Shown: positions 5,491 through 58,112, counted from the stretch's first letter. The stretch is 64,000 nt of DNA from Paragordius varius (GCA_964247055.1 OZ176058.1:4278001-4342000); one strand, 5' to 3'. The notes: a model not told the origin generated them from the sequence alone. Made by a program: numbers and translations.

Positions 5491-7455
5491 CACGGGTACG
5501 GCAAAGGGGTGCATCATGTCCCGGGCGCCGTTATTTAGGGGCCCCTGAATGATTTTTTCAAATTAAATTTAAATTATGCAAAAACAATAACAACTTTCAA
5601 ACAGGATTTTTCAGCAACTTAGGTAAACCCTAAAATAACAAACATTAAACGTTATGCAAAAAACAACTTTCATTATTCCCTTCAACATGTGCAAACTTAA
5701 TTTTCGCTTAATAAACGTTACTTTATCAGGCACATATTGTTATTTCGTTTATTGCCTCTAATTAAATTATTTTAACATTTCTCTCTGTTCAAAACATTAT
5801 CTCTTATTCTCATAATTCATAATTGCATTTTTATTTTATACATATTCTCAAAACCCAATTTTATTAACTTAAATCCCCAAGATCATACATAGCCTTGTTT
5901 TTGGATAATTACTTTCATTTTCATCTCATATCAAGGCCTAAACTCAGCGGTTACGCAAATAGGAAACAATGAGAATGTGTATGAAACATTATTTAACAAA
6001 AATATCTGACCCTATCATTGCAAAAGTGTATGCGACACAAACATAACGGCACCCCTTAATAATAACTATACTACATCTGACACCCTAATTATTGATTCAA
6101 TATATAGAGATGAGAAAACTTCATAATTCCAAGCACTATACCTATAGAATTTAATGATGTCGCCTTTTTCTAATAATAATGTTCCTCCCGTAATATCTAA
6201 TCAGCTTGTCACAGAAATGATTTTTTGTGGATTTCAAGTATATCAAAATAAATGCCATCTCTTTGAAACAAAAAATCATCGTTCAATGCCTCAATCTTGG
6301 TATTTTCGACGTGTCGGAAAATAGAAGAATTGAAGTTGTTTTTATATATACCAAAAAACAGATCAGAGTATTGTTATAGCCTACTTTTTGATCGGTCTTA
6401 TTAAATCGAATATTGGCCTACAAATTTCTAATCAACCAAAATCTCCCTTTTGGAGGACATGTTGCAAGTTTAGTGTATCTAGATGACTCAGCACCAAATC
6501 CTGGAAATCTCTTATCTTTACTAATGTAGCTCGGTTTGACCCAATAATGGGAGACTGAGAAAAATTGAATCTCCTAACACTTTATCCTATGTTTCATCCA
6601 AAATCCAAAACGAATTCATACATCTTTTTGCTTTAAGAGTTAAAGCAAAATTGATCGACGACATTAATAAAAGTAAATATTATGAAATTAAATTTGATTT
6701 AACAGATAAAGCCCACCGAAAACAAATTTTTTACATGTCAGGTATGTGTTTATGGCAAGAGAGATTCATAAAAGAATCCTTTGTGGGTTTTATTCAGTTA
6801 TTCAACAAAGATTGTTAATTCAAAATGTAATTTTAGAAAATCTATATATGATTAATATTCAGTTATCAAATTGTATATCTCAATGCTATGATAATGCAGT
6901 TGTGATGTCGTGCCACATTTCAAGCGTTCAACAAGTAATTCTGGAAAAAATAAAACGCAATATTTGTAAATTGTCACAATCATTATTAAATTTAGCAGGA
7001 GTCACGGTAGCAAAACAAGATGTTATTGTTGTAATCTGCGGAATAATTAGTATTATTAAATGGGACCTATAAAAATTTTAAGCTGTCTGAAGCCCGAGGG
7101 AGTGCTAGAATTAAGCACTTAATGCCATTGTTGAGGGAATAGATTTGATACAGCTATTAGATGTTTTAAGTAAAAATACTTCAAATACTAGTGAAACAAG
7201 AATTGAGGCATCCATTTTACACTTGAGAGTGTTTTAAATTTCAATTTTCTAACATTTATCTTTTTCTGGCATCAAATACTTATAAGAATCGATAGGGTTC
7301 AACATAGATTGAATGATCCTAAAATTAATTTTAATGAAGCATTTAAGGTTATATTTTTTTACTAAATTGTTTATTGGCTTTCAAAAAGAGGAAGGGGGAG
7401 GGGGTGCCATAAGAGTTTTATGCCCCGGGCGCCGCAAACGCTCAGTACCCCACTG
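5491..7455 (+). mobile_element. Internally deleted hAT element (ZMYM1/Tip100-like)
   Basis: GC-rich ends with CCCGGGCGCC subterminal motifs (~5520, ~7425); right end rc CAGTGGGGTAC; encloses transposase remnants. TSD not convincing. Confidence 0.8.
6390..7350 (+). pseudogene. ZMYM1/THAP12-like hAT transposase remnant
   Basis: VLLNRILAYKFLINQNLPFGGH, NPGNLLSLL..RFDP, and ORF 6746-7072 with CISQCYDNAVVMS (family motif CRGQGYDNGANMSG) and SLLNLAGV. Multiple stops and frameshifts. Confidence 0.85.
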
Positions 7456-7986: not shown

Positions 7987-8824
7987 TATAAATATCAATA
8001 TCAGCTTTTTGCTTAGGCTGTTTGGGGCTATCCGATATAGGACTATAAAAGTTGAATAAACTGTAATTATAAGTTTTACTAGAAGATGTAAAAATTAAAA
8101 TTTTTATCAAAATAACGATAAAACGATGTTTATTTTCGAATTTAGGGCAAAAAACTAACCCATTTTTTTATCTTATAGTGTTAACCTATAACTTTAATGC
8201 TTTTATGCCCAATAAAATTTTAAATTTTATATTGTATGATAAATAAAAATTTAATCTATATATATCTCTTCAAATTACCAAGTAATGTATAGTTATTCCC
8301 AGGATATTCATAACAATGTAAGGTGTTTTTGGGGTAAAAAACGATAAAAAAAATTATGAAAAATATAAAATATTAAATAAATAAATATATATGTGTTTTA
8401 AGTTTGTCACACATATATATTTCAATTAAACTTTAACCCCTATAAGCGATTGACCCTATCGTTTATATCATTTATATAAATATATATCATACTTTGGGCG
8501 TATAAAGATTTCAAAGTTTAAGGTAAATTTTTTGTGTAATTAACATAAAGAAAAAAGGTTTAAAAAAAATTTCTATTTAAAATAAATTATATAACATAAA
8601 TAAAAAATTTATGATTAATTATCGCCATTAATTGTGGTTTTCAATTTAAGATAAAATTAATATCATTTGAAAATAATCATTAATTTTACAATATAAAATT
8701 TATGAAAAAAATATAAATTTAATACACTAAAAACTAAAATTATACGGACAAAACGTAAAATCATAAGGACAAATATTTTTTTTCAAAAGACAAGCAAAAC
8801 CTTGATTTTTTTATTTAAGCTATT

Positions 8825-9523
8825 TAGGTTACTATGCAGAATTGATTGTGTTGTAATGCTTTTTTAAAAATGTCCGGTCAGACCCAGTCAGACCATGGTC
8901 ATGACCACTTTTAACTAAATATCATGCGATATTGGAAATTATGAAAATAATGCTCGAACGACAGTTGCGTTTTTCACTAATAATGTCAAGTTTTTACTTA
9001 AAAGTTTGTGTTATACATTTTTTTGCTATTTATAATTTATAAATAATATATTCAATCAAATTTAATCAAGAATTTTTGTTTCAAATAAATTTTGCCACAT
9101 GTTTGGGGCTTCTGAATCTTCAAATAAGCTTTTAATATTGCATATATATTCAAAAGAATTTTACCTAGTTTGTTTTACACTTTCTTTCATCATTGAAATA
9201 TCCAATTAAAAGATGTCTTTTCATTTTACTTGTTCAAATGTAGTATATAATTGCATATTTGTACAGTGTTGGATTGTTTCGTTTTTTGAAATAACTAGCT
9301 TGCTAATGTTATATGGATGCATGTTTAACAGATTTAAATATATTTTAAATAAACATATTTAAATATCGATTTTATATATTTAAATATTTAATTTATATTT
9401 TTTAAAAATATATAAAAAAAAATAAAATCTTGCTAACTTTCTTTCAAAAAAAACAAGCAATTTTTCAAAAAACAGCGGTTTTTTTAAATTACCATGGTCA
9501 AAAAATAAATACCCGCTGCCCTG
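8825..9523. mobile_element. Non-autonomous hAT-like element, uninterrupted relative of 59263-61267
   Basis: Shares gtccggtcagacc..ggtcatgaccactttt and ~500 bp of downstream sequence with 59290-59340 plus 60740-61250; ends approximate. Confidence 0.7.
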
Positions 9524-10245
9524 GTTGTAATATATATATATATATATATCTTTTCATTTGCCATTTAATACAATGAGTTATATTTAAAAAAATCAGGATT
9601 CAAAAAATTTGTTTTGTTAGAAAGATACATGATTCTTTATATTTTTAAGTTTTGTCCGTATAATTTCTCAAGTTTAAATAAAATATGGAGGTGTTCTTTT
9701 ATGTATATTTCTCTCAATGTTTTTACTTGATGTGAAATTTCCATTTAAATTTTTATTGTAAAGCTCAAGTTATCAGAATTCTTCATAAATTAATTTAATA
9801 TCAAATTCTTTCGTTTGTTGAATAAACAAATATTCGTGTTTTTCATTTGAACAACATAAAGGTAGAGTTAAGAAATACTTAGCAAGATGTATAAATTTTA
9901 TCGACTCATTTAAGTCAACAATCTAAAAAAATATCTGCAATTTTTTATTGACGCATTTTAATTTTCTTATAATAATTGGCGCTTATATTCGGCGAAATAC
10001 TGCCAATTAAATGTTTTTATAATATATATATGTATATATACAGAGTCTATGTTTACAATTGCGCAAACAAATTATCTATTCTAAAAATAAAACGTTGCTT
10101 ATTTCTGACTAATATTGTTACCTTTGATAAAAAAGGTGTTTGGGACCTCCCATTGAAAAAAGTATAAAATACCCCGGTTTTTTAAACAAGAATTAACATT
10201 TCAAATTTTTCTTTAAATTCTGTGTGTGTAAAACTCTTAACTACG

Positions 10246-12423
10246 ATGCGTTTTATAATATTCTTAATTACTACGATCATTCTTATGCCTACGATCTTTG
10301 TTGAAGGCATATCTGGTAATGTTTTATTCATATTGTTTCATTTTAACAATTTACATTAAAAAGACGAACTTAAAAACTTAGGGTCAATATTACCGTAAAA
10401 ATTGAAATTATACGGATAAAACGTGAAAATATAAAGACAAGTATTTTTTTTATAAAACATACCATATTTTTTTTATTCTTGATTTTTTTTAATATAACTG
10501 ATTGTTTTAAACTGCAAAATATAAAATAGAAATGTAAATTGGCAGCAAAATCAATTCTATATTTTAAAATAATTAAACTAGCCAGTATGGGAAAAAATAG
10601 GGTTCGAAAAAGTATGGTTGTCTTTTGAAAAAAAATTTTGTCATTATATTTTTACGTTTTGTCCGTATAATTATAATTTTAACTGTAATTTTTTTATCTA
10701 TTAAATTAGATCAACCATCGGAAACGGAAAAAGGGGACATTAGAAATGATTGTAATATTAAACCAAGGTATGTTTTGCGTGTTAAACATTTTAATTATAC
10801 AGAATGACAAAATGTTAAAAAAACATAAATTTTATTTTTCAAAGACAATCATATTTTTGAAACTTAATTTTTATAACTTGTTGGTTTGGTTTGCAAATCT
10901 AAAGCCATATAAACGAAATTATATACACACTCAATTTGATATACCATAGACAGTTCATATTCACCCTCGAACAATCTAAATTCACTCTAAAAATGATTAA
11001 TGTGTTTTTGAACTAATATTTACTCATTATTCATATGAAATATATCTTAAAGCATAGTTTATTATTTTTTCAGTATTATTTTATTTTATACAGAATTTCA
11101 TTTTTTTAAAAAATATATAAAAAATGGGGAATTTTTAATCTTAAAAAACATATAATATATTTGAGGGTGAATTTGAATTGTTTGAGGGTCAATTTGAATT
11201 GTTCAAGGATGAATTTGATTTGTAAATGGTATATAAAAAATGATAGTATGCATTGATAATATAATCAAGATTGTCTTTAAAAACATTTGTTTTTTGGATT
11301 TTATGCTTGCTTGTTTTCGTATAATATCAAATTTTATAAAATACGTTATATATATATATGAATGAATCTAGTCAGGAATGCTATAAACAAAGCGAAAAAA
11401 AATACAATCCACCATATAAACTGACAGGAACAAAAGTTCCCGAGCCCCAAGGAAATAAATTTAAATGCGAAAAAGGCAAAAAAAACTCATATGACTATTG
11501 TTCATGTTCAAGAAAGTTAATAACAGTACAGTATGCCATAAAACATAATATTAGTCCATAAAAGAATTTTTTTTTATTATAAAAAAATATTTTTTATTTT
11601 CATATGGACACTAATATTGTTTTATGCCATACGCTACTTTAATTATTTTTTTATACTAAATTTAAACATATATAATGTTTGATCATACATAAAATGTAAT
11701 TTTTTACAAAAGTGTTTAGAGTAACATTGTTAGAGTTTCTTATATATTGTTGTCAAATATATCAAAGGAGGAATAAGTTTTTCTAGGATACAGTAAAAAA
11801 TTGAAATTATACTATGAAGACAAAACGTAAAAATATAAAGACAAATATTTTTTTCTAAAAGACAACCAACCATACTTTCACCTGTTTTTTTCCAATATAA
11901 CTAACTCATTGTTTTAAATGTGGCAAAGTGTGAAATAGAGATATAAATTACTAACATAATCAATTGTATATTTTACAATTGTAAGCTAAATAACTTATAT
12001 TGGAAAAATTAAGGTTTATAAAAGTATGGTTGTTTAGAGAAAAATATTCCGTATAATTACAATTTTTACTGTAAACATAAATTTTGCTTAATTTTATTTC
12101 AAAAAAAATATTATGGGCATCGTAAATTAATTACGCATTCAATTTTATAGAGTGAGATTTGTAAATATTATTAAATCTATGTATGTGTAAGGATAAATAA
12201 GGTTAAATAAGATATGATTGATTATCTTTTCAATAATAAGATTATTTGTCTTTAAGTGTTTACGTTTTGCCTGTATTTTAGTTTTTATGGCATACAAACT
12301 TTTAAAATTTATAATAATTTTTCCCCCCAATTTTAACTTTTTAGGGCTAAGAATGGAAAATCCATTTATGCATGGTATTGGGATTGTGAAATGGAAAATA
12401 ACCAAAGTATGGAAGAACACTGA
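10246..12423 (+). CDS. Small secreted six-cysteine protein, copy A (121 aa)
   Basis: Exons 10246-10315, 10710-10767, 11372-11530, 12345-12423; all introns GT-AG, phases 1/2/2, total 366 nt. MRFIIFLITTIILMPTIFVEGIS (signal-peptide-like) DQPSETEKGDIRNDCNIKPSQECYKQSEKKYNPPYKLTGTKVPEPQGNKFKCEKGKKNSYDYCSCSRKLITVQAKNGKSIYAWYWDCEMENNQSMEEH*. Confidence 0.82.
10393..10685. mobile_element. MITE family A in intron 1 of secreted gene copy A
   Basis: Both TIRs present, TA flanks. Confidence 0.88.
10944..11229. mobile_element. MITE family B (CCATTTAC termini, 21-bp AATTCAAATTCACCCTTGAAC subterminal repeats)
   Basis: tata|CCATAGACAGTTC...GATTTGTAAATGG|tata, with inverted arrays of the 21-mer. Confidence 0.85.
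11791..12071. mobile_element. MITE family A
   Basis: Both TIRs, TA flanks; lies in intron 3 of the secreted gene. Confidence 0.85.
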
Positions 12424-12613
12424 AAAGCAAAACTTAACTAAAAAACTGCTCAAAATTTTAATAATCATCAATTTTGTGGCAAATTATTGATTAGTTTTTT
12501 TAAATAAAATAAATTAAATTAGCATAAATTATTGTTGTTATACAATATTAAATTTTTCAACATTTTTATAGAGCAGAAACTGACTCTTTCTTATACAGCA
12601 GTAGAATCCTTTG

Positions 12614-12889
12614 CAGTAAAAACTGAAATTATACGGACAAAAGTAAAAATATAAAGACAAATATTTTTTTTCAAAAAGACAACGATACTTTTATTTCAAT
12701 ATATAACTCCATGTTTTTAATGTCAAAATCTGAAATAGAGATATATATTACTAATAAAATCAATTCTTTTTATCACAAATAGATTATACGAGAAAAACTA
12801 AGATTTTAAAAAGTAGGGTTGTCTTTTAAAAGAAAATATTTGTCTTTATATTTTTACGTTTTGTCTTTCCATATATTTCAATTTTAACT
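12614..12889. mobile_element. MITE family A
   Basis: Both TIRs, right one degenerate. Confidence 0.8.
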
Positions 12890-12962
12890 CTATGTTGACT
12901 TTGATTTCGGGCATAAAATATGTTTCAATATTCAAATCATGACCGCTTTTTTTTAATATAAT

Positions 12963-13200
12963 CCATTTACAGTTAAAATTCACTCATGAACAAATTAAAT
13001 TCCTCCTTGAACAATTCAAATTCACCCTAAAAATAAATTATATGTTTGAACTACTATAACTCCTTATTAATATAAAATATATCTTTATGTCATTTTCAGT
13101 ATTATCTTAATTTAAAACAAAATTTTTATTTTTTATAATTATAGGTAATTTTTAATCTTAAAAAACTTATATTTTGTATGAGAGTGAATTTGAATATTAA
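12963..13200. mobile_element. MITE family B, right end truncated
   Basis: CCATTTACAGTT left end with 21-mer repeats; absent from duplication copy B. Confidence 0.75.
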
Positions 13201-13700
13201 TAACTAACTTTCTAGCAATTTATGTATACTTACTCATACTGTAATTCGTATAATATATAATCCCAATTTTTCGAAATAACACATTATTAAGATTATAAAT
13301 TAAACATTGTTGTTTTTAAAATGATTAATTTTATTGTCCTAATCCAATTTTAAATAAAACTAAAATTTATACAAGTTTGGTGAAATAACCGTTTATAAAT
13401 CGTATTTATTTAATTTTAACACGCTAAAACTAAAGCTAATTATTTTATCTGATCACATCTAACATTAATATAAACAGAAATTGCATTATTTGTATATTTA
13501 ACTAATGAACACATGTCATATTAAATAATTTTTATTTTAATCCGTAAAAAAAGTAATATTAAGTTTTCAAAAATAAATCTTTTTGAATCCAAGTATGGCT
13601 AAAAAAAATTAATTTTAATTCAGAGACAAAAAAAGCACAAAGTGATATATTATTGGTTAATAATAGGAGGGTTTTTAATTTAGTTTTTTAGGGTTAAATA

Positions 13701-13996
13701 CAGTAAAAACTGAAATTATACTATGGACAAAAGGTAAAAATATAAAGACAAATATTTTTTTTAAAAGACAACCCCATACTTTTTCAAACTTTAATTTTTT
13801 CTATATAGGCTCTATTTAATAACAGTTGTTATATATAGAATTGATTGTGTCACCAATATATATATCAATTTTATAATCAATAGGAAACAATTAGTAATAT
13901 TTTGAAAAATGGGGTTTAAAAAATATGGTTTTGTCTTTTGAAAAAATATTTGTCTTTATATTTTTACATTTTGTCCGTATAAACCAATTTTTACTG
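13701..13996. mobile_element. MITE family A
   Basis: Both TIRs present. Confidence 0.88.
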
Positions 13997-14402
13997 ATAA
14001 CTCTAATAAATTAATAGATTGCTGCAAAAAAATTTTTTATTTTTTTTTGCTATTAAATATCTCTCAAAGAACTTTTTGTTAATAAATATATATACGATAT
14101 ATATAAATAATTTAAATAAAGTGGTTGGTTTAAGTTGTATTTTTAATTTATACAAAAAATATGACTTGTTTTTATGATAAAAATTACAGTAAAAATTTCA
14201 ATTTTACGAAGAAAATGTATAAAAAATATAAAGACAAAAAGATTTATTTTTCCAAAAGCCCGCTCGTTATTTATTCATTTTTAAACCCAAATTTCACCTA
14301 AACTATTTAGTTTTATAATCTTTAATGACTAAAAGAGAAGTAGTTAAAAATATATGGTTATCTTTTACAAAAAAATAATTTTTATAGATTTTAGATTTTA
14401 TA

Positions 14403-14645
14403 TAGTAAATATTGAAATTTTATACGGAAGGACAAAACGTAAAAGTATAAGACAAATATTTTTTTTAAAAGACAACCATAAAGTCGTAAATTATAGAATA
14501 GATTGTGTTAGTTTCATTAAAACTTTGCCATTTTAAACAATAAGTTTTATTTTAAAAATCAAGATTTAAAAAGTATGGGTTTAGAAAAAAATATTTGTCT
14601 TAATATTTTTACGTTTTGTCGATGGTATAATTTCAATTTTTCTTG
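14403..14645. mobile_element. MITE family A, degenerate; a further left arm at ~14187
   Basis: TIR-derived sequence at both ends. Confidence 0.7.
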
Positions 14646-15026
14646 TACATATTAAATATTTTCTATAAAGGGTATATATACAAATTAAATTGTAAATAAT
14701 TTAATTTATTCTCACACTATAGGAAAATTATTTTCACACTAAAAGAAAAAGCATAAGTTAATAATAAAATAATCTTAAATAATATAATTCTAATAAAATC
14801 ACCCTTTAACATTTCGAATTCATCTTTACACCTTTAAACTTATTATTTTAACATTTGATACTAACTTTATAAATTTTTGGGCCAATCAAACTCATTATTG
14901 ATTGAATATTTTATGATTTATCTTTTTTACTAATTTATAAATAAGAATCATTTTTTAAAAATATAAAAAAATTCGATTTCCAAAAACACAATTAATTTTT
15001 AAGATAAATTTGAATTGTTTAAGGGT

Positions 15027-15756
15027 TTAAAAATAAGGGTTCGTAGGGTTATGTTGTCCATATGAGGAGTTTGTAGTCAGCTGATTGGCAGAATTTTGAC
15101 CATAAAAAGCATTGTTGGATCCTGCGTTGCCATGGTAACTAAAAGAAGGGAAATAAAAAATTAATAGTTGAATGAAATTGTTGGACTAATTAAACTATTT
15201 AAAATATTTATAAATAAAATTTTAAATTAATGGATAGATATAATAAAAAAATTAAATTTTGAATAAAAATTACAAAATGATACTTATACATATTCAAAAA
15301 CTATATGTTTCTTTCAAAAGATTTATATCAATGTTAAAAACATTTAAATGATAGATAAATTATCCATAAAGTTATATGAAAACATTTATATGGCAACATT
15401 ATGTCAAAACAAAAGAAGTATTTTCCTTTAGATCTAAAATCAGCTGATTTATCCAAAATGATTCAAGTATGATATAATGAATGAATGAAAAAGCATTTAC
15501 CCCATAGGATTTGGGGGAGGAGCTATGAAATTTTGCCCACCAGAATTAACATTAGGGGCCGTGTAGGGGAAATGACTACCCACAGGGTATATTTGTGGCC
15601 CATAGGAAGGGTTGCCATGGTAACCGCTAACAGCTGATAAATTTTGCTGGTTACCATGGTAACCACTGTTGTTATTTATAATTTCATGGGACATGTGGGA
15701 AGATGGTGGTCCATAATTCATTCTAGAATGTTCATAGGCTGGTGTCGGCAAGCCAC
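15027..15756 (-). CDS. Duplicated SS18 terminal exons 6' and 7' (intact; alternative 3' end or young partial pseudogene)
   Basis: Exon 6' 15501-15756 and exon 7' 15027-15138. Same splice sites and phases as 23404-23653 and 22912-23023; frame and stop retained (...HNPTNPYF*). Confidence 0.6.
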
Positions 15757-15810
15757 CTGAATAATTTGGGCCTGTAACTGTATAGCTAGACCCTAAATTT
15801 ATATTTTATA

Positions 15811-15940
15811 CCATTTACAACTCAAATTCACCCTTGAACAATTCAAATATTCACCCTTGAACAATTCAAATTCACCCTTGAACAATTTAAATTTACCCTA
15901 AAAAAAATTATGTTTTTTCGGGATAATATATCACTTATGA
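15811..15940. mobile_element. MITE family B left arm at the duplication breakpoint
   Basis: CCATTTACAACTC plus 21-mer repeats, then homology to copy B is lost. Confidence 0.75.
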
Positions 15941-18062
15941 TATAAAATTTATTTGAAGTAATATTAAAACATCTTATAATTTGAATGATTTACCTTAAAC
16001 CTTATAATTAATAAAATTGTTATGTGATAATATAAGACCATCATCAATTAGACTTACGTAGGATATGGAGAGTTAGGTAAAAAAGTAAAATTTTATTATT
16101 TGACTTATATAAATAAATCTGTGCTAGTTTTAATAAACAGGAGCATTGGATTTAAAAATTATTATAGCGACTTTCAAACATAACATACTTTATATTCTTA
16201 CCCATTCCTATTTCTCAAGACAGTTATTTTAATTTTATCAAAATTGTTGAAATGTTAATTGAAAAAATTATTAAAAGCATTCAGCAATTAGGTATTTGAT
16301 TGATTTTGCTCTCTAAAATTAATTAAATCCTATTCAATAATTTTTTTTACATAGAAATCGCTATTTATATTATAATTTTATAAACTAGGATGTTTATTTC
16401 AAACAAGACCACTTACATTTTTTAAAAAAGAAATTGTTTATCAAAATAGCTTAATTTTATTAAATTTCAAATATGTATTCAGAGCATTTTACATTCATAC
16501 CATTGAAGTTTCAAAATGATTTAATCCCAAATTGCAACTAATCTTTAATTTTATAAAGATTAGAATTGGATGAAGAATCTTTTTATATTTAATGGGGGTA
16601 AGTTCTTTGAAACTTTCGAGTTTAAGGGCTAGGGTTATAGCGAGGGATATGAGTTGGTTTATTTTCTTAAAGAAGCCTACGGGACTTCCTAGGTGTGCGA
16701 AACAGGTCAAGACCCATGCATATTTATAGTAACCTTGCTGTTTAAATGCAAAACAAAGTATTCATTTGATAGTTAAAATAAAATGTATTCTATATCCATT
16801 ATTTTTGTTAAGTGTATCAAAATTACAAGATGCCACATATCATGGATGAAATAAGAAATTTATAAAATGTAAAATTTTTTAAATTGTTTCATAAGGTTAG
16901 TACAAAATAATAATTACCTGCTTTTTGCTATAATTATATCTTTAATGATACATAAATATTTAAATCTGAACAGATTTAATTTATCCAAATACAATATAAA
17001 ATGAATATAAAAATAAAATCCGAACACCTAAAAATTTTATAAAAAAATTTAGCTAATTAATCATATACACAAGTGTATTATATTAGTAGTTCCAAATGGC
17101 TATAGAGAGTTAATCAAGAGCTATTCAAAATATGAAATATTTATTTCTGAATGTTTTAATAGGCTATATATATAAATTTACAAATATTTTTGGTGTTTTG
17201 TTACATAACAAATATTTTAATTTATAAGAATATAACATCAATATATTTTTATTCTGATATTTATTTAAATGTCATTAATTCTTAATTCTTAAAATTATAT
17301 CGCTTATGCCAGATGGTTCTCATAGATACATTATTACAAATCTAAAAATTGTGATTCGCTCATTTTAAGGAAAATTATAATGAATTTTTTGGAGCAGAAT
17401 GGTTTTTTTATATGTTTTTTTATTTTTAGATATAAATTGTTTTAAAAATGCCAGATAATATCAATTTGATCTAAATATTTACGAAATTTAAATGTGATAC
17501 TCGAAGAACAATTTACTAATATTTTCAGATAAATTTAGTGTGGGAGTAAGCATTCCGAATAAATTGTGTTGCTTTATTATATTGGAAACATCCTTCATGA
17601 GAACTTTAAATTTTGCTCTACTATCTGTCAATGATCATTCTATCGGGTAAAATATTATAAATTGTTTGTTATGTTAAAAGTCATAAACAATTTCCAAATT
17701 ATATTTTTGGTTTTTTGGTGTATCAATTAAATTAATGCAGTATAGATATTTTTATTATGATGTTTGTACAAATATGGATATAATTAATTATAAAAAATAG
17801 TATTTGCACAATTAATTGATTTGGGAATAATTAAATATATAAAGAATGATGTTTAAATCAAGAAAATTAAAATTATAAACAGAAAAAAATGAAAATTAGC
17901 TTCGTTTACTTTCAAATTTTAATTAATTTTTTTTCAAAAACCTAATTATTTGGCAAAAATTTAAAGACAAACAAATTTTTTAATCAAATACCCCAGTTTA
18001 TTAAACAAGAATTAACATTTCAAATTTTTCTTTGATTTCTCTGTGTAAAACTCTTAACTACC

Positions 18063-18132
18063 ATGCGTTTTATAATATTCTTAATTACGGCGATCATTAT
18101 TATGCCTACGATCTTTGTTGAAGGCATATCTG
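18063..18132 (+). pseudogene. Third, orphan copy of exon 1 (signal peptide) of the secreted gene
   Basis: MRFIIFLITAIIIMPTIFVEGIS+G|GTAAT; homology spans ~17986-18208. Confidence 0.8.
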
Positions 18133-18207
18133 GTAATGTTTTATTCATATGTTTCATTTTTACAATTTACATTAAAAAGACAAACTTAGCAACTTATGTT
18201 CAATTTA

Positions 18208-18469
18208 CAGTAAAAAATTGAAATTATACGGATAAAACGTGAAAATATAAAGAAAATATTTTTTTCTAAAAGACTACCATACTTTTCCAAACTTCATTTT
18301 TAAAATATAACTTATTGTTTCAAATTCCTAAAATGCTAATAATATATATTACCAACACAATCAATTCTTTATATAACAATTGTAATAAAATAGTTTTTAT
18401 ACAAAAAATTAAAGTTTATTTTCAAGATATTTTTACATTTTGTCCATAATATCATTTCAATTTATATTG
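18208..18469. mobile_element. MITE family A, probably a recombinant copy
   Basis: Left arm and flank match the intron-1 copy; right flank matches sequence upstream of the gene (cf. 9620-9790). Confidence 0.75.
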
Positions 18470-19026
18470 TAGTTGTCTTTATGTTTTGAATTGTCTGTAA
18501 AGTTTTTATTTTTACTATAAAGCAGCCCAACTTATCAGAATTATTCACAAAATTAATTTAATATCGAAATTCGTTTGTTAAAAACCCAAAAATTCGTGTT
18601 TTTCATTACAACATAAAGGTAGAGTTAAGAAATATTTAGCAAAATATATAATTTTTGTTGACTCATTTAAATCAACAATCTCAATTTTTGTTTTTGTTTT
18701 TGAATGAAAAAATATCTGCAATTTTTTATTGACGCATTTTAATTTTCTTATAATAATTGGCGCTTATATTCGGCGAAATACTGCCAATTAAATGTTTTTA
18801 TAATATATATTATATACAGAGTCTATTATGTTTACAAATTGCGCAAATAAATTATCTATTCTGAAAAAACAAACGTTGCTTATTTCTGACTAATATTATT
18901 ACCTTTGATAAAAAAGGTGTTTGGGACCTCCCATTGAAAAAAAGTATATAATACCCCAGTTTTTTAAACAAGAATTCACTATTTCAAATTTTTCTTTAAT
19001 TTCTGTGCGTAAAACTCTTAACTACG

Positions 19027-21493
19027 ATGCGTTTTATAATATTCTTAATTACGGCGATCATTCTTATGCCTACGATCTTTGTTGAAGGCATATCGGGTAA
19101 TGTTTTATTCATATTGTTTCATTTTAACAATTCACAGTAAAAAGTATGCAGACAAACTTAAAAACTTATGTTCAATTTAAAGTAAAAAATTGAAATTATA
19201 CGGATAAAATATAAAAATATAAAGACAACTATTTTTTTTCCATAACATAACCATACTTTGTAAAACCTTAATTTTTGCTATAAAAATAAACTATATAATT
19301 AATTAGGCTACCAATTTACAAACTATATTATATTTTGCAATTGTAAATTATCAGTTATATTTAAAAAAAATCAATATTCAAAATAATGGTTGTCTTTTAG
19401 AAATAAATATTTTATCTTTATATTTTTACGTTTTGCCCGTATAATTTCAATTTCACTGTAATTTTTTTATCTATTAAAATAGATCAACCATCGGAAACGG
19501 AAAAAGGGGACATTAGAAATGATTGTAATATTAAACCAAGGTATGTTTTGCGTGTTAAACATTTTAATTATACAGAATGACAAAATGTTAAAAAAACATA
19601 AATTTTATTTTTCAAAGACAACCATAGAAAATCGATTTTTATAATTTATCAATGTGGTTTGCATATCTAAAGCCATATAAACGAAAATATATATACATAC
19701 TCAATTTGATATACCATAGACAGTTCATATTCACCCTTTAACAGTTCAAATTTACCCTAAAAATGATTAATGTGTTTTTGAACTCATATTTACTCATTAT
19801 TTACATGAAATATATCATAATGCTTAGTTTATTATTTTTTCAGTATTATTTTAATTTTATACAGAATTTCATTTTTTAAAAAAAAATATATAAAATAATG
19901 GGGAATTTTTAATCTTAAAAAACATATAATTTATTTGAGGGTGAATTTGAATTGTTCAAGGAGGCATTTGAATTGTTTAAGGATGAATTTGAATTGTTTA
20001 AGGGTGAATTCTGGTATATAAAAAATGATAGTATGCATTGATAATATAATCAAGATTGTCTTTAAAAAACATTTGTTTTTTGGATTTTATGCTTGCTAAT
20101 TTCCGTATAATTTCAAATTTTATAAAATACGTTATATATATATATATATGAATGAATCTAGTCAGGAATGCTATAAACAAAGCGAAAAAAAATACAATCC
20201 ACCATATAAACTGACAGGAACAAACGTTCCCAAGCCCCAAGGAAATAAATTTAAATGCGAAAAAGGCACAAAAAACTCATATGACTATTGTTCATGTTCA
20301 AGAAAGTTAATAACAGTACCGTATGCCATAAAACAATATTAGTCCATAAAAGAATTTTTTTTATTATAAAAAAAACATTTTTTTCCCTTCTTTTATGGAC
20401 TAATATTGTTTTATGCCATACGCTACTTTAATTATTTTTATACTAAATTTAAACATATATAATGTTTGATCATACATAAAATGTAATTTTTTACAAAAGT
20501 GTTTAGAGTAACATTGTTAGAGTTTCTTATATATTGTTGTCAAATATAATATACATATCAAAGGAGGAATAAGTTTTTCTAGGATACAGTAAAAAATTGA
20601 AATTATACTATGAAGACAAAACGTAAAAATATAACGACAAATATTTTTTTGTATTTTTTTCACCTATTTTTTTCCAATATAACTCTCATTGTTTTAAATG
20701 TGGCAAAGTGTGAAATAAAGATATAAATTACTAACATAATCAATTGTATATTTTACAATTGTAAACTAAATAGCTTATATAAAGTTTAAGGTTTATTTAT
20801 GGTTGTCTTTTAGAGAAAAATATTCAGTATAATTTCAATTTTTACTGTAAACATACATTTTGCTTAATTTTATTTCAAAAAAAATATTATGGGCTTCGTA
20901 AATTAATTACGCATTCAATTTTATAGAGTTAGATTTGTAATTATATACCAATTACAATTCAATTTCCATCTTAAACAATTCAATTTCACCCTTGAACAAT
21001 TAAAATTCACCCTCAAATAAAATATATGTTTTTTAGGATTAAAAATTACCAATATTTTTATATATTTTTAAAAAATGAAAATTTTGTTTTAAATTAAAAT
21101 AATACTGAAAAAAGAATTAACTATAACATAAAATATTTCATATTAATAATGAGTTATATTAATTAATAATTTATTTTTAGGGTAAATTTGAATTGTTTAA
21201 AGGTGAATTTGAATTGTTCGAGGGTGAATTTGAACTGTAAATGGTATATATCGTATGTATGTATGGATAAATAAGGTTAAAAACGGTATAATTATCTTTT
21301 CAATAATAAGATTATTTGTATTTAAGTGCTTACGTTTTGCCTGTATTTGAATTTTTATGGCATAAAAAGTTTAAAATTTATATTAATTTTTTCCACCCAA
21401 TTTTAACTTTTTAGGGACAAGAATGGAAAATCCATTTATGCATGGTATTGGGATTGTGAAATGGAAAATAACCAAAGTATGGAAGAACACTGA
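19027..21493 (+). CDS. Small secreted six-cysteine protein, copy B (121 aa)
   Basis: Exons 19027-19096, 19483-19540, 20162-20320, 21415-21493; lengths and phases identical to copy A. Six aa differences (T10A, K64N, E67K, K79T, Q96P, A97D); all Cys kept. Confidence 0.82.
19180..19458. mobile_element. MITE family A (intron 1, copy B)
   Basis: Paralogous insertion to 10393-10685. Confidence 0.82.
19714..20014. mobile_element. MITE family B (intron 2, copy B)
   Basis: Paralogous to 10944-11229. Confidence 0.82.
20587..20847. mobile_element. MITE family A (intron 3, copy B)
   Basis: Paralogous to 11791-12071. Confidence 0.82.
20948..21244. mobile_element. MITE family B, present only in copy B
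   Basis: tata|CCAATTAC...GTAAATGG|tata; empty site in copy A near 12165-12185. Confidence 0.88.
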
Positions 21494-21679
21494 AAAGAAA
21501 AACTTAACTAAAAAACTGCTTAAAATTTTAATAATCATCAATTTTGTGGCAAATTATTAATTAGTTTTTTTAAATAAAATAAATCAATTTAGCATAAATT
21601 GTTGTTGTTATACAATATTAAATTTTTCAACATTTTTATAAATTTTGACTCTTTCTTATACAGCAGTAGAATCCTTTAT

Positions 21680-21952
21680 CAGTAAAAACTGAAATTATAC
21701 GGACAAAACATAATAATATAAAGACAAATATTGTTTGTTCTAAAAGACAACTATACTTGTAAATTTTGTTTAACTAATTGTTTTAAACTGCAGATATAAT
21801 ATAGAAATGTAAATTGGTAGCACAATTCATTCTCTAGTTTACGATTGTAATTAAATATTTTATATTTCAAAAATTAAGGTTTTAAAAAGTTTGGTTATCT
21901 TTTTTAAAAAAATTTTTGTCTTTATATTTTTATTTTGTCCATTATAATTTCA
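21680..21952. mobile_element. MITE family A
   Basis: Same site as 12614-12889; right end approximate. Confidence 0.75.
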
Positions 21953-22232
21953 TATATACCATATATCAGAAATTGAAATAAAGTTTTGGTGCCTTTTTGC
22001 TTATGTATATATTTTGTTTTATTAAAAAAGCGTTGAATTTTAAATTCGTACATAAAATCAGTCTTGTTTTCATAATAAATACAGTAAAAATTGAAATCAT
22101 ATGAAAGAAAATGTATCAACAATATAAAGATAAAAATATTTATTTTTTCAAAAGCTCGCTCGTTATTCATCATTCATTTTTAAAATTTCACCTAAATTAT
22201 TTAGTTGTAATGTTGAATAACTAAAATACATA

Positions 22233-22522
22233 CAGTAAAAACTGAAATTATACGGACAAATGAATATAAAGAAATTTTTTTTCAAAAAACAACCATACAC
22301 TTTTAAACCTTAATTTATACCATATAAACTATTTAATTAATATTGTATATATAAAATTAATTGTATTATCAATAAACATTTCTATATTATACTTTGCAGT
22401 TTTAAATAAAGAGTTTGATTTAAAAAAAGGAAGATTTAAAAAGTATGGATGGTTGTCTTTAAAAAAAATATTTGTCTTTATATTTTCACGTTTTGTCCAT
22501 AGTATAATCTTAATTTTTACAG
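22233..22522. mobile_element. MITE family A
   Basis: Both TIRs, TA flanks. Confidence 0.85.
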
Positions 22523-22911
22523 TAACTATTTATATTATTTTAATTTTTCTTGTATATACTCCAAATTAAATTGTATATAATTTAATTTATTTTAATACTA
22601 TAGTAAAATTAGTTTCACACTAAAAGAAAAAGCATAAGTTAATAATAAAATAATCACTTCAAATAATATTATAAATCTAAATCAACCTTTAACATTTCAA
22701 ATTCATCATTACACCTTTGAATTTATAATTTAAACTATATTGTGTGTTCTTGGGTTAACCAAACTCAATATTGATATTAAATATTTTATATTAGAATTTA
22801 TCTTTACTGATACAAATTTTAAATAAGATTCATTTTTTTCAAAAATATAAAAAATTTCAATTTCCAGAAAAAAAAACACAATTAATTTTTAGGGTATATA
22901 TTTTAAAAAAA

Positions 22912-25900
22912 TTAAAAATAAGGGTTCGTAGGGTTATGTTGTCCATATGAGGAGTTCGTAGTCAGCTGATTGGCAGAATTTTGTCCATAAAAAGCATTGT
23001 TGGATCCTGCGTTGCCATGGTAACTAAAAGAAGGAAACAATAAATAAAAATTAAGTTATAATTTAATGAAATTAGACAATATTAATATATAAAATAATTT
23101 TAAATTAATTGAGAAAAAAATAATTAAATTTTGAATAAAATTACAGAAAAATACGCTTTTATATATAAATATTTATAAGATAATTATACATATTCAAAAA
23201 CTATATGTTTCTTTCAAAAGATTTTTAATATATCAATATGCTAAAAAAATTAAATTACAGCTAAATTATCCATAAAATTATATGAAAACATTTATATAAT
23301 TATGAAACAATATTGTATAAAATCAGAAGTATTTCTCAAAAATCAGCTGATTTATCCAAAACAATTTAAATATGATATAATGAATGAATGAAAAAGCATT
23401 TACCCCATATGATTTGGGGGAGGAGCTAAATTTGGGCCACCAGAATTAACATTAGGGGCCGTGTAGGGGAAATGACCTACAGGGTATATTTGTGCCCCAT
23501 AGGAAGAGTTGCCATGGTAACCGCTAACAGCTGATACATGGTGCTGGTTACCATGGTAACCACTGTTGTTGTTCATAATTTCATGGGACATGTGCGAAGA
23601 TGGCGGTCCATAATTCATTCTAGAATGTTCATAGGCTGGTGTCGGCACGCCACCTGAATAATTTGGGCCTGTAACTGTATAGCTAGACCCTAAATTTATA
23701 TTTTATATCATTTACAACTCAAATTCACCCTTGAACAATTCAAATTTACCCTTGAAGGATTCAAATTCACCCTTGAACAATTTAAATTTACCCTTGAACG
23801 ATTCAAATTCACCCTTGAACAATTCAAATTCACCCTAAAAATAAATTATATTTTTTCGGGCAGCTAATATAACTCATCATTAATATGAAATATATTTTTA
23901 CGACATAGTTTATTATTTTTTCGGCATTATATTAATTTTAAACAGAAGAACTTCATATTTTAACAATATTATAAAAAAACGGTAACTTTAAATATTAGAA
24001 TACACATAGTTTATTTTAGGGTGAATTCGAATTGTTCAAGGGTGAATTTGTATTGTTCGAGAGTGAATTTGAATTGTTCGAGGGTGAATTTGAAATTTAA
24101 ATGGTATATATTATATTACTTAAATTTTGTTTTGCTCAATTTACATATTATTTTTAGCAATCAGAGTATATATGGGCACAAAAAAACAAAAAATAGTTCT
24201 GAGATTTACACTTTCTACAAAATAAACGATGATTGATTAACAAAATATAAAAAACTGTAAAACTTTACTTAAATTTGCTTGTTGTTGATGATTATTATTG
24301 ATGTCATTTATTGGGTAATTTTCTGCCCCTAATTGATATGAGCTAGGGTAGTTTATTGAATGAGAAAATTTATTCGTGCCCTGAAAGGTACCGGAAAACA
24401 GCTGATTTTGACTTCTTCCAATATCGTCTGCTGGATGCTGTTGTTTATGTTGAAAATTTTGATTTTGATAATTATGATTTGCAACCATATGGCTACTTGG
24501 ATACTGATGAGGTGGAAAATAGGGCCCAGCTGTTTGAAATGCCGCGGCTTCCGGATTATTTGTCGTTGCGATAACACCAGCTGGATATCGATAATACGGA
24601 GGCGCATTTATTAAACTCCCTCCTGATGATGACACCATATGATTATAGGGTGAAACCATGGGGTTGTTTGAATATGGGTACGGTGCTGACCTATTTTTAT
24701 CGCCATATGTTGTAAAACTGGAATTGCCATGAGTCATATAATTGGGGTTAGCGTGGTTTTGAGATGCGAAATTTTTCATGTTACTGTTATGAGTCGAATC
24801 TATATTGCTAGCGTTGAAAGCTGTTTCTTCATTAATAGAGACGTTTGAAGTTGAGCCCACAATTTTAGCTACAACATTTTCAATCGATTGCTCATAAGCC
24901 GCTAAATTGGCGGCGCAAACAGCTGTTTGCGGTTGGGCCTGAACATCTGATTGTTGGTTGTTGGCAGCAGGGGCAACGGTCGTCGACGGTAACGAACCGT
25001 CCGAGCCTGAAGCTAAAACAGCTGTTTTATCGATATCGCCTGCGTTTGGAGTGTTACCATGGTGATATGGTGAGTTAATAATGACTAGAATGGATAGGAA
25101 AAATGGATTATGTGAATGTTTCGTGAGCAAATTATTGATTCATTCATTAATAAATTGAGTTATAAATTTTAGGTTAGATTAAGTAAAAAGCAATATATAT
25201 CAACCAAACTCTGCTGTGATTAGCAACATGCATTATAACTATTTCATTATGTTATATGATATACAAGTGATTATTTTGTCATTTTAGTGCTACTTTCAGG
25301 AATTATATGGATTAATAAGGTTTTTTCAATAAAATTAAGAGAAAACACACTTTAAATGATCCAAATTTAAACCCTAAGAAAATATTAAGCATCTTGAACT
25401 TTAAGAAACCTTATTATGATGTAATGGTTACATAGTACATAAATTGATTCCATTTTTACCAACTTGTGAAAAAATTCGGCTTGCAAAGATGTTTTAGCAG
25501 AAACTTCAAAAAAATTATCCAGGCAACACTACGGGGGGTAGAATTCAGGCTTTGTTAGCCAGTAATATGAAATATTTTACAAATATAAGATTACAAAATT
25601 AATTTATATCCTTTTTTTCTCTACCCTAGTGTATATGAGATTAGGTTTTTAATTTTGATGTGCGCTTATGATTCGTAAACTGGCTAGGGGAGAGAGTAAA
25701 ATGTCTTTTTATGTCAGCAATTTTAAAATTTTTATTTATAATCGTTTAAAACATGATATATTATTTACAATTTAAATTCACCCTTGAACAATTCAAATAC
25801 CCCCTAAAAATAAGTTATGTGTCTTTGAACTATTATAACTCAACATTAAAAAGAGATATATTCTTATAACATCGTTTATTATTTTTTCAGTAATATATTA

Positions 25901-32935: not shown

Positions 32936-35900
32936 CATTTACACTTCGAATTCACCCTTGAACAACAATTCAAATTCACCCTTGAAAACAATTTAAATTC
33001 ATCCTAAAATAAATTATGTGTTTTTTGTTAGATCAAAAATTACCTTTATTATAAAATATTTTAAAATATGACTGTTTATTTATATTATTGAAAAATTAGT
33101 AAACTATGTCATAAAAATACATTTATATTGATAATGAGTTATATTAGTTCGAAAACATTTATTTTGTTTTTTAGGTAAATTTGTATTGTTCATTCAGTCT
33201 CGAACAATAAATCATAAAATGAATTATAAGTTTTTCAAAATAGGAATTACCTATATTTTTAGGATAATTTTTTAAAAAATTGAATTTTGTTTAAATTAGA
33301 ATAATAGTGAAAAAATAATGAACTATGCCATAGGAATATTCTTATTAATAATGAGTTATATTATATTGAAAACACATAATTTGTTTTTAAAGTAAATTTG
33401 AATTGTTCAAGGGTGAATTTTGTTTATGGGTGAATTTGAATTGTTTAAGGGTGAATTCGAATTGTAAATGGTATATGTATATTGAAACTCAAAACTTATT
33501 TATTTTTATATTTTACTTTTTAAATTTCATTTAAGTATTATTTCCTATCCAATTTTAAAAGTAGTTATACTTGAATATTAATATTAAATACTGTTATTAT
33601 GGTTAAACATATAAAAATACGATAAAATTAAATTACTATATATATATATATATTATTGGCAAAATATAATTTTATTTAAATTTTTAAATTATTATGGTTT
33701 TTTAACTTAATTATGTTTGTTGTTTTTAATATAAATAGTTTTTATAATAAATATTGTTAGAAAAATTAATAATTTTCAATAATTATATATGTTTTGGCTC
33801 TAAAATTTTAATTTAACAATATATATATATATATATATACTATGGGTCTCTTTTGTGTTATTAAATAATATATATTTTAATGAAAAATATGTTTTTATTT
33901 ATGTAATTTTTTAATTTGTTTATAAAAAGGAATTATATTTTAAATGTAAAATTTTAATTTTTTATATTTAATTTATATTCAAAAATAAAAATTATACACT
34001 CACATAATTAACAAAAAAATATACATGACTGTAATATACTTCTTAACTATAAATCGAATTACAGTAAAAACTCAAATTATACAGACAAAACGTATATAAA
34101 GACAAATATTTTTTTCTAAAATACAACCATACTTTTTAAATTTTGATTATTTGTAATATAACTCATTGTTATAAATGTCAAAGTTTAAAATAGGGATATC
34201 CAACACAATCAATTCTATATTTACAATTGTAACTAAATAATAGGTAAAATTAAGGTTTGAAAAAGTATGGTTGTCTTTTAGATAAAAATATTTGTGTTTA
34301 TATTATTACACTTTGTCCGTATAATTTCAGTTTTTACTGTAATATTAGTAATAATATGTATGTATTTTTTGTAAAAATTAATTTTAAATCTGAAAATTGA
34401 AGATGCGCAGGACTGATGCTTAAGGCTTAGAGCTATTCAAAGGGTTACCTCCTTCTTTGGGAGAAATAAAACTCTTATGTTGATAACGGTTGAATATACA
34501 TCTTAAAAAAAGGATTGTTTTTTATGTTACAATATTAATTTGCATAATTTAGATAAATTTTAACTTTAATAGGCCATCTCTTTATTGTTAAGTAACTAAT
34601 TTTTTATTAAATATACATCCCATTTATGTGATCAAAATAATCTTTAAAAATGTCTATCAAGTGTTGAAAGTTAATTTTTGCCGTATTTATATGTATTGAT
34701 GTTATATTTTTCGAAATTTGTTAGTTTTTTTAAATTTAATCTTTTATTTTGATTATAATTTTTTATTAAACGATAGTATTTTATATATAAAAGATTCAAT
34801 TTTTTTCTGTTTTTTTAAATCTTTAGCGGTAGGGGCTAGTGCAGTTTATGCAAGTAAGAATGTAGCAACTAAACTCATTTATACCATGTCCCCGGGACTC
34901 GATGTCATGGCTCAAGCTCAACTTGAGGTCGATTTAACGAGTAAGTACTTGGAATTTTTAAGTTCCACAAAAATTTTCAACACTTTATTGAAAACTATTG
35001 ATTTTAGCATTTTTTATAATTTGATTTTATTTATATTTAAAGGGTTTTTTTAAAATTATTCAAGGGTTTTTAGGCCTAAGTATATGTATAGCTCTAGGTC
35101 TACTTGAAGTTGATTTAACGAGTAAGTACTTGGAAATGGTTGTAGGTTTTGCACAATTTTTTTTAAAAATTAATTCAAAATTATTGATTTTAGCCTTTTT
35201 TATTAATTTTATTTATATTTAAAGGGTTTTTTATAAGCCTAAGTATATAGCCTAAGTCGAAGTCGATTTAACGAGTAAGTACTTGGAATTTTTAAGTTAC
35301 ACATATTTTTAACCTTACAAACTTTGATGAGAGATGTAATTTATCATCTATAATACAATCATAAAATTTTGGAAAGTTGATAAAAGTTATCCAATATTTT
35401 GGTTTTTTTTATCAGTTTGGGTTTCCTAATAGTTTATTTAAAAAACAAGTTTTACCTTTAAGCCTAAGATTTCTTTTGACAATTTTTTTGAAATTTTTTA
35501 TAGTAGACTGTAAAGTTTTTTTCCAGTTTTGGGTTTTTTAGGTTCTCAAAAACAAGTTTTTCCTTTTACCCTGAGAATTTTTATCTTTTGACAATTTGTT
35601 TTTGCTTAACTTTTAAATTTTTTAATATTTTAGCCATCCCGGAAGGCAAAACTGTCGTGCTTAAATGGCGAGGCAAACCTCTCTTCATAAAACACCGAAC
35701 GAGTACGGACATTAGCAAGGAAGAAAGTACAGACTTGACTCATTTGCGAGATCCTCAACCTGACTCTGTTAGGGTTCAAAAACCGCAATGGCTTATACTT
35801 ATTGGCATTTGCACGCATTTGGGTAAGATTTCAAGAAAAAAAAGTAGTATAAAAAAATGTTTCGAGGCAAAAAGTTTGAGATCTATAACATTGGCAAAAC

Positions 35901-57329: not shown

Positions 57330-58112
57330 ATGTACGAATTCAAAAACATTATTTCAAACGTATTTCATGGCAAAATTTCTGATATAAAATCTTATCAAAT
57401 CCTAGATTTACAAGATGAATCCCAAAATCAAACCCTGATTAATATGGAACAATTTAATGCATCAAATGAACAACAATACACATCAAATAGCAATCAACAT
57501 CTATCCAAAGAAAAATCTGATTATTTTAGTTTTTTGAAGTTGAATATGAAGGAAAGATTGTATATTTCTACTGCGCTTTTAATGTTTTCTCTATTGACTT
57601 TTATGTTATCTTGCATGTTTATCCCAGTTCTTATATTGAAGGCTCGAAAATTTGCGCTTTTATATTCAATGAGTTCACTAAGTGGATGTTTTAGCATACT
57701 TATTCTTTCTAAAGGCTTACCTCAAATCAATTGGAATTTTACATCTATTCTACCCAATACTTTGGGCGTCAAAACAACTTTTTCCCATATTAAATATCAA
57801 ATTTTGACGCCGCAAAGCACCAATATTATTTCAAACAACAATAATTGTCAGGAAAATAATTCTTCAAATAATCCCAAAAACATTTCATTATTTTCTAACA
57901 CGTCTTACACTTTCTTGGCTTATCTATTTTTTTCAATTCTTACCATTTATTCGGCTGTCGGTTTAAAATCTACCGTACTTACGGTTTTGTTTGCCATACT
58001 TCAGAGTTTGACGCTCATAATTTATGTTTTAAAACTGTTTCCTGGTAGTTCTTACACGCTCGGATTTATTCAAAAAATGTTGTTTTATACTTGTACCAAA
58101 TATTTTAAATAA
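57330..58112 (+). CDS. SFT2D3: Vesicle transport protein SFT2 family, SFT2D3-like, intronless (260 aa)
   Basis: Four hydrophobic segments; motif FIPVLILKARKFALLYS corresponds to SFT2D3 PVLLLRARKFALLWS; extended N-terminus as in SFT2D3/Sft2. Confidence 0.82.
   Translation: MYEFKNIISNVFHGKISDIKSYQILDLQDESQNQTLINMEQFNASNEQQYTSNSNQHLSKEKSDYFSFLKLNMKERLYISTALLMFSLLTFMLSCMFIPVLILKARKFALLYSMSSLSGCFSILILSKGLPQINWNFTSILPNTLGVKTTFSHIKYQILTPQSTNIISNNNNCQENNSSNNPKNISLFSNTSYTFLAYLFFSILTIYSAVGLKSTVLTVLFAILQSLTLIIYVLKLFPGSSYTLGFIQKMLFYTCTKYFK

Follow-up and report, generated by a model that had tools for sequence, protein, structure and literature searches.

The epidermal growth factor (EGF)-like domain (PF00008) is a six-cysteine extracellular module with the spacing C-x7-C-x4-5-C-x10-13-C-x-C-x8-C, and the Kazal domain (PF00050), also with six cysteines, includes the arrangement C-x10-C-x(2-3)-C-x(17)-C; PROSITE holds patterns for both. 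Another six-cysteine system is MgCRP-I of the mussel Mytilus, the members of which combine a signal peptide with a six-cysteine mature part, are encoded by four exons, originated by gene duplication and form a large family for which positive selection has been shown (PMC4558851). Here we analysed a 64-kb window (OZ176058.1:4278001-4342000; positions are counted from its first nucleotide) of the 110.5-Mb, 44-contig assembly GCA_964247055.1 of the horsehair worm Paragordius varius, in which two neighbouring copies of a four-exon gene are predicted to encode a small secreted protein with six cysteines. The locus probably represents a genuine, lineage-restricted (orphan) secreted-protein gene, present as two tandem paralogues that stem from a segmental duplication of about 6 kb and have a neutral divergence of around 5.5%.

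The six-cysteine gene resembles MgCRP-I in its predicted signal peptide and six-cysteine part, its four exons, its origin by duplication, the lack of relatives outside a narrow lineage and a function that is likewise unassigned (PMC4558851). In MgCRP-I, however, the cysteines are arrayed as C-C-CC-C-C within about 30 residues of a single exon, whereas in the present protein they are distributed over three exons and 73 residues and include a CxC motif (residues 86-88). Moreover, the pro-region of MgCRP-I has a conserved dibasic site, while the present pair has no conserved processing site, the KK at 79 being lost in copy B. Finally, MgCRP-I is a large and positively selected family, in contrast to the two copies found here, which show no such signal.

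Gene model and coding signatures of the two copies

Each copy consists of four short exons on the plus strand, and the spliced open reading frame (ORF), as rebuilt from the sequence, is intact in both (366 nt, that is 121 amino acids and a TGA stop). In copy A, exon 1 (10246..10315) contains the start codon and a 23-residue hydrophobic leader and ends in a phase-1 GTAATG donor located exactly at the predicted cleavage site. Exon 2 (10710..10767), which is identical in copy B, encodes the acidic N-terminus of the mature protein with Cys1 and is followed by a GTATGT donor. The lysine-rich core with Cys2 to Cys5 is encoded by exon 3 (11372..11530; GTATGC donor), and a Trp/Tyr-rich stretch, Cys6, the acidic tail and the TGA stop are encoded by exon 4 (12345..12423). 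The corresponding exons of copy B are located at 19027..19096, 19483..19540, 20162..20320 and 21415..21493, the last one including the TGA stop. All junctions of both copies follow the GT..AG rule, with intron phases 1, 2 and 2. The cysteines occupy positions 38, 46, 75, 86, 88 and 110 in both copies, leaving gaps of 7, 28, 10, 1 and 21 residues. An alternative, weaker GTTAAT donor follows position 11515, and its use would shorten the protein to 116 residues and the last gap to x16 instead of x21. Since an HSP70 intron elsewhere in the same genome also has GTATGC as its donor, the GTATGC donor after 11530 is the likelier of the two. As an observation on the genome, both its HSP70 and its tubulin loci contain introns.

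On the same strand, a TATA box is found 83 nt before the ATG of copy A (10163..10168) and is conserved in copy B, 82 nt before the ATG (18945..18950). An AATAAA polyadenylation signal follows the stop codon at the same distance of 79 nt in both copies (12503..12508 and 21573..21578). Two other interpretations of the ORF pattern were considered and rejected. A ciliate genetic code as the cause of the fragmented ORFs is not compatible with the other genes of the window, which read through long frames in the standard code, and a minus-strand ORF of 108 amino acids over exon 4 (12145-12471) is reduced to only 52 amino acids in copy B.

The leader encoded by exon 1 has an arginine at position 2, a hydrophobic core of 17 residues and, ahead of residue 24, the small residues Gly and Ser at -3 and -1, respectively. 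Its Kyte-Doolittle value is about +2 over residues 1-21, while all later windows are hydrophilic and no second hydrophobic segment follows. In a rule-of-thumb check, the protein thus shows the classical features of a secretory protein, namely a positively charged n-region, an h-region, a suitable -3/-1 motif and no further membrane span. Exon 1 encodes exactly the 23-residue leader, leaving a predicted mature part of 98 residues with an isoelectric point of about 8, 15% Lys, 10% Glu, a net charge of about +1 to +2, one NQS sequon and a tail that is first aromatic and then acidic. The GKK at 77-79 was considered as an amidation or cleavage site and rejected, the KK at 79 being absent from copy B.

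While gene anatomy, coding signatures, copy number and the lack of relatives in the searches described below were observed, we infer that the protein is secreted, forms disulfide bonds and acts extracellularly. Each copy would have a TATA promoter of its own, and its transcript would lose three GT-AG introns and receive a poly(A) tail roughly 100 nt after the stop. The leader would direct the product co-translationally into the endoplasmic reticulum and would then be cleaved off. The 98-residue hydrophilic and mildly basic part may fold oxidatively around three disulfides and be secreted, and it might act outside the cell as a small stable protein of a binding or defence type.

In AT-rich DNA (24% GC), hydrophobic pseudo-leaders and TATA and AATAAA motifs arise easily by chance. 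Therefore, the tests of the model were chosen among signals that are more costly to obtain. All four exons are GC islands, with 31-35% GC against a background of 19%, and rank among the top 5.5, 3.9, 2.0 and 2.4% of non-coding background segments of their length. Ile, Phe, Leu, Val and Met together make up 11% of the mature peptide, whereas the corresponding share is at least 22%, and on average 43%, in the background open frames (83/83 frames of 40 or more codons). A log-likelihood score for codon usage, trained on 1,672 codons of the BiP, HSP70, Sft2-like and SS18 genes of the same genome, gave +22 and +25 bits in the proposed frame versus -23 to -80 bits in the other two frames, and the per-codon score of the gene was reached by only 3.7% of the background frames. 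Across the gene span, the two copies differ by 25 insertion or deletion (indel) events, none of which is in an exon, as compared with 5.0 expected (P = 0.006). Taken together, these signals are best explained by a real gene for a secreted protein.

The initial annotation had assembled the same four-exon, 121-residue protein from pieces that the ORF track presents as unrelated fragments, and the GT-AG junctions and the frame rebuilt in both copies agree with it. Its statement that both copies are intact holds as well, with the 366-nt frame and all six cysteines present in each, and so does the spacing C-x7-C-x28-C-x10-C-x-C-x21-C, in which x21 depends on the GTATGC donor. The hydrophobic leader and the lysine-rich six-cysteine mature part were also recovered, the leader being signal-peptide-like by hydropathy and by the (-3,-1) check. 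As a methodological point, short exons hidden among transposons at 24% GC can be recovered by combining composition with paralogue comparison.

Relation to known cysteine-rich families

Relatives of the protein were searched for exon by exon, using exon pieces and exon-spanning ORFs as queries. No Pfam family was found at E <= 1 with the pieces of exons 1, 3 and 4. A full HMMER search with exon 3 (52 amino acids, four of the six cysteines) gave no match at E <= 0.001 among 1.84 billion representative proteins, a library that evidently includes the annotated proteome of the hairworm Gordionus. Likewise, the 80-codon open frame that surrounds exon 3 in copy B had no match in a word-indexed set of 5.8 billion proteins, and the 67-residue ORF around exon 3 had none in an exact-product look-up. 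The ESM Atlas offered no usable neighbour, no PDB sequence matched at E <= 10, and none of 244 pattern matches in metagenome contigs was confirmed. These results are in line with the initial annotation, which had recognised no family: none emerged from Pfam, PDB, the ESM Atlas or the 1.84 billion proteins.

The protein could nevertheless belong, as a highly diverged member, to a known family of disulfide-rich extracellular domains, EGF-like or Kazal-like with enlarged loops, and serve as a receptor ligand or protease inhibitor. Its C-x7-C start and C-x10-C-x-C centre match the EGF spacing, and the only moderately confident element in an AlphaFold2 model of exon 3, a beta-hairpin at exon residues 30-47 with a predicted local distance difference test score (pLDDT) of about 70-75, lies exactly between Cys3 and Cys4/5, where the main hairpin of EGF is found. 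Furthermore, a domain split over exons 2-4 could escape exon-wise scans. On the other hand, exon 3 has neither a Pfam match nor a PDB sequence match, and the loops differ markedly from those of EGF, with 28 residues between Cys2 and Cys3 instead of 4-5 and 21 between Cys5 and Cys6 instead of 8. The Gly/aromatic signature that follows the CxC in EGF-like domains is missing as well. As for Kazal, the six cysteines and the segment C-x10-C-x(1)-C-x21-C come near to the Kazal arrangement, but Cys2 and Cys3 are separated by 28 residues rather than 7, the position of the conserved Tyr is shifted by one, and CxC stands in place of Cx2-3C. The PROSITE signatures, applied as regular expressions, match the joined model in neither copy, and this applies to the EGF signatures C-x-C-x5-G-x2-C and C-x-C-x2-[GP]-[FYW]-x4-8-C as well as to the Kazal core C-x7-C-x6-Y-x3-C-x2-3-C. 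Membership in either family is therefore unlikely on these comparisons.

The motifs of other cysteine-rich groups were also compared. Of the pattern of alpha-beta defensins and scorpion-toxin-like proteins, the CxC is present at 86-88 while CxxxC occurs nowhere in the model, and the CxGxC of cystine-knot growth factors and hormones is absent. We regard the predicted product as a small, secreted and cysteine-rich protein that is new and restricted to its lineage; a gene of this type would be ordinary.

Nearly every animal genome has orphan proteins that are small, secreted and rich in cysteine. If expressed, the present pair would contribute an unannotated secreted disulfide protein of no recognised family to what little is known of horsehair worms at the molecular level. 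The secreted products of these worms are of interest since the worms live inside arthropods and alter the behaviour of their hosts. In a hairworm, the protein could function in the host, in immunity, or in the cuticle or egg strings, and the data favour none of these. Nothing ties the gene to a particular role, and its interest is modest unless expression or comparative data link it to parasitism.

Chance frames, constraint and selection

Several observations weigh against an orphan secreted-protein gene. The model is a prediction from sequence. TATA and AATAAA are common by chance at 24% GC, and the leader was judged by simple hydropathy and the (-3,-1) check, in DNA that easily yields pseudo-leaders. 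The exon-wise searches may have missed a known domain if it is divided among exons 2-4, and AlphaFold2 on exon 3 alone reached a pLDDT of 58.7, so that the idea of a disulfide domain receives no fold support. Between the copies, the exons are 2.5% diverged and the introns 11.4% as raw values, or 5.4% after the removal of windows with badly aligned, non-homologous transposons (miniature inverted-repeat transposable elements, MITEs). The contrast in substitutions between exons and introns has p = 4e-6 when differences are counted unmerged and p = 0.07 when those within 5 nt are merged, and it is not significant with wider merging. In addition, conservation in parts of the introns equals that of the exons: 143 nt (10706-10849) and 112 + 81 nt (11646-11839) are identical, while the neighbouring intron is 5-25% different. 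Patchy gene conversion could therefore mimic constraint. Either such conversion or unrecognised functional elements may underlie the two islands. An Rfam scan of the whole 64-kb window gave no match for them, so no known RNA accounts for their conservation.

If the locus were not a functional gene, it would consist of four chance open frames in AT-rich DNA, or of two copies of a defunct gene, and the GT..AG dinucleotides that join the pieces would be of the kind that chance often provides. The cheapness of leaders, TATA boxes and AATAAA signals would suit such an origin, as would the lack of a homologue in the exon-wise searches and the dependence of the substitution-density signal on how clusters are counted; moreover, two copies that differ by only 2.5% would be expected to keep an open frame even in the absence of selection. 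Set against this are the GC islands at all four exons, for which the four percentiles give a joint chance of about 1e-6 if they are independent, and an amino-acid composition unlike that of all 83 background frames. The codon-usage signal is limited to the proposed frame, the 366 exon nucleotides contain 0 indels versus 25 in the introns, and the end of the leader exon coincides exactly with the (-3,-1) cleavage motif. In view of these signals, a non-functional locus appears distinctly unlikely.

For the orphan gene, the remaining question concerns the way in which its copies have diverged. They differ at 9 nt and at six amino acids (T10A, K64N, E67K, K79T, Q96P and A97D), and four of the five changes in the mature peptide alter the charge. 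The SS18 exon that was duplicated together with the six-cysteine gene provides a further measure, with 5.6% divergence. By the Nei-Gojobori method, the coding differences amount to 6 nonsynonymous and 3 synonymous changes; the count is 6:3 rather than 7:2 because codon 97 (GCT/GAC) holds one silent step by either path. The ratio of nonsynonymous to synonymous divergence (dN/dS) is 0.45 for the whole coding sequence (Fisher p = 0.38) and 1.05 for the mature part, with 5 versus 1 changes (Fisher p = 1.0), in a comparison of two sequences with no outgroup that can neither prove nor refute positive selection. The mature part has accumulated 5 nonsynonymous changes, as compared with 13 expected at the intron rate (P = 0.011). 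Neither a dN/dS significantly above 1 nor an expanded, multi-member family with a hypervariable mature part was found. The data fit, and point to, mild purifying selection on both copies or relaxed constraint after the duplication. The charge-changing differences are as compatible with such a relaxation as with adaptation.

The initial annotation had counted the same nine differences and six amino-acid changes, and these stand, but its division into seven nonsynonymous and two synonymous changes gives way to 6/3. With it falls the statement that the mature peptide carries no silent change, as codon 97 includes one silent step. That several of the mature changes alter the charge is confirmed (four of five), and the introns are indeed more diverged than the exons (5.4-11.4% vs 2.5%). 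The comparison with the evolution of toxins, effectors, antimicrobial or gamete-recognition peptides, on the other hand, is not sustained by dN/dS values of 0.45 and 1.05 and by amino-acid changes below the intron expectation. More generally, a 7-to-2 count of changes between two paralogues does not constitute evidence of positive selection.

A fast-diversifying secreted toxin, host-directed effector, antimicrobial or gamete-recognition peptide, the mature part of which was positively selected after the duplication, would account for the fact that the 98 mature residues differ at five positions, with a change of charge at four of these, as opposed to a single silent step. It would also suit a secreted-looking, cysteine-rich, tandemly duplicated and lineage-specific gene in an animal that is probably a parasite of arthropods. 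Lineage-specific six-cysteine families with a conserved leader and a variable mature part are known, such as MgCRP-I of mussels (PMC4558851). However, neither the dN/dS of the mature part nor that of the whole differs from 1, and nonsynonymous change remains below the intron-based neutral expectation. The gene has two members only and forms no expanded array, and a net charge of about +1 to +2 is weakly cationic for an antimicrobial peptide. An arms race of this kind therefore seems decidedly improbable. More speculative still, and very doubtful, is a hairworm-specific, recently born (possibly de novo) three-disulfide effector of a new structural family, secreted into the arthropod host or the environment and shaped by adaptive charge swaps.

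Duplication units, neighbouring features and host lineage

The window is eukaryotic and animal-like in its content and has a GC content of 14-31%, with about 24% overall. According to blastn, duplication unit A (9762..15900) holds gene copy A together with duplicated SS18 tail exons on the minus strand, and unit B (18524..23800) holds gene copy B and SS18 tail exons that are contiguous with the rest of SS18. The two units of about 6 kb are 83-88% identical over the blastn blocks, gaps included. The co-duplicated last exons of SS18 lie on the minus strand at 15497-15751 and 23400-23648; in addition to the 5.6% difference mentioned above, the two exon copies differ by two in-frame codons, and both frames are open (84 and 82 amino acids). 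The SS18-like gene itself is Q/N/Y-rich and is located at 24237-25130 on the minus strand.

A search of the whole genome (110.5 Mb) retrieved only the two full copies of the six-cysteine gene and one orphan leader exon. The latter (18063..18132, plus strand) precedes copy B by about 960 bp; its ORF and its GT donor are intact, but exons 2-4 are missing. It belongs to a third-copy fragment (17983-18334) that starts just downstream of the TATA position, covers the leader exon and reaches into the first part of intron 1. Because its homology begins just after the TATA position, the orphan leader has no TATA box. It may serve as an alternative first exon or represent a dead remnant.

The ends of both duplication units fall within arrays of 21-bp tandem repeats, which may have mediated the 6-kb duplication. 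Such arrays occur in both orientations and are foldback-like (10937-11236, 12952-13240, 15823-15918, 19893-20018, 20937-21238 and 23697-23855). The introns of the six-cysteine gene are swollen by transposons: of the 394 nt of intron 1 in copy A, 307 nt belong to a MITE with 74-nt terminal inverted repeats (10386..10692), and intron 3 of copy B carries an extra insertion of 298 nt. The MITE family has members of about 290-310 bp with inverted ends of approximately 57-74 nt. At least 11 copies were seen in 16 kb (8724-22530), several of them inside the six-cysteine introns, with examples at 10386-10692, 11789-12060, 13695-14002 and 21676-21952. MITEs at the same intron position in both paralogues are only about 75% alike.

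The mitochondrial contig of the assembly (15,693 bp) contains many long perfect palindromes with almost no spacer, with arms of 208, 140, 138, 131, 92 and 80 nt. At 6749-7451, approximately ten 72-nt units follow one another in tandem, and each of them contains a palindrome of 49-52 nt. Long inverted repeats in mitochondrial coding sequences have been described as exclusive to Nematomorpha (PMC10380579), and by this trait the palindromes point to a nematomorph lineage. Genome-wide scoring of protein domains offered a hint at most: two strong tubulin-domain matches were among the best candidates scored, and none of these candidates was an arthropod R&R cuticle domain or a nematode cuticle-collagen N-domain, for which the controls were equally silent.

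Elsewhere in the window, a Rieske iron-sulfur exon is located at 35588-35929 and an Sft2/Got1-like ORF at 57330-58112. An exact-product look-up of the Sft2-like ORF gave no match. Among 5.8 billion proteins its single match was a protein of Gordionus sp. (Nematomorpha), to which it aligns over the full length with 40% identity; the alignment extends over an unusual linker that joins the membrane spans. Finally, an intact reverse-transcriptase ORF of a non-long-terminal-repeat (non-LTR) retrotransposon is present at 59340-60719 on the plus strand (459 amino acids; RVT_1, E = 2e-38), and the proteins nearest to it, from fish, insects and crustaceans, are about 43% identical.

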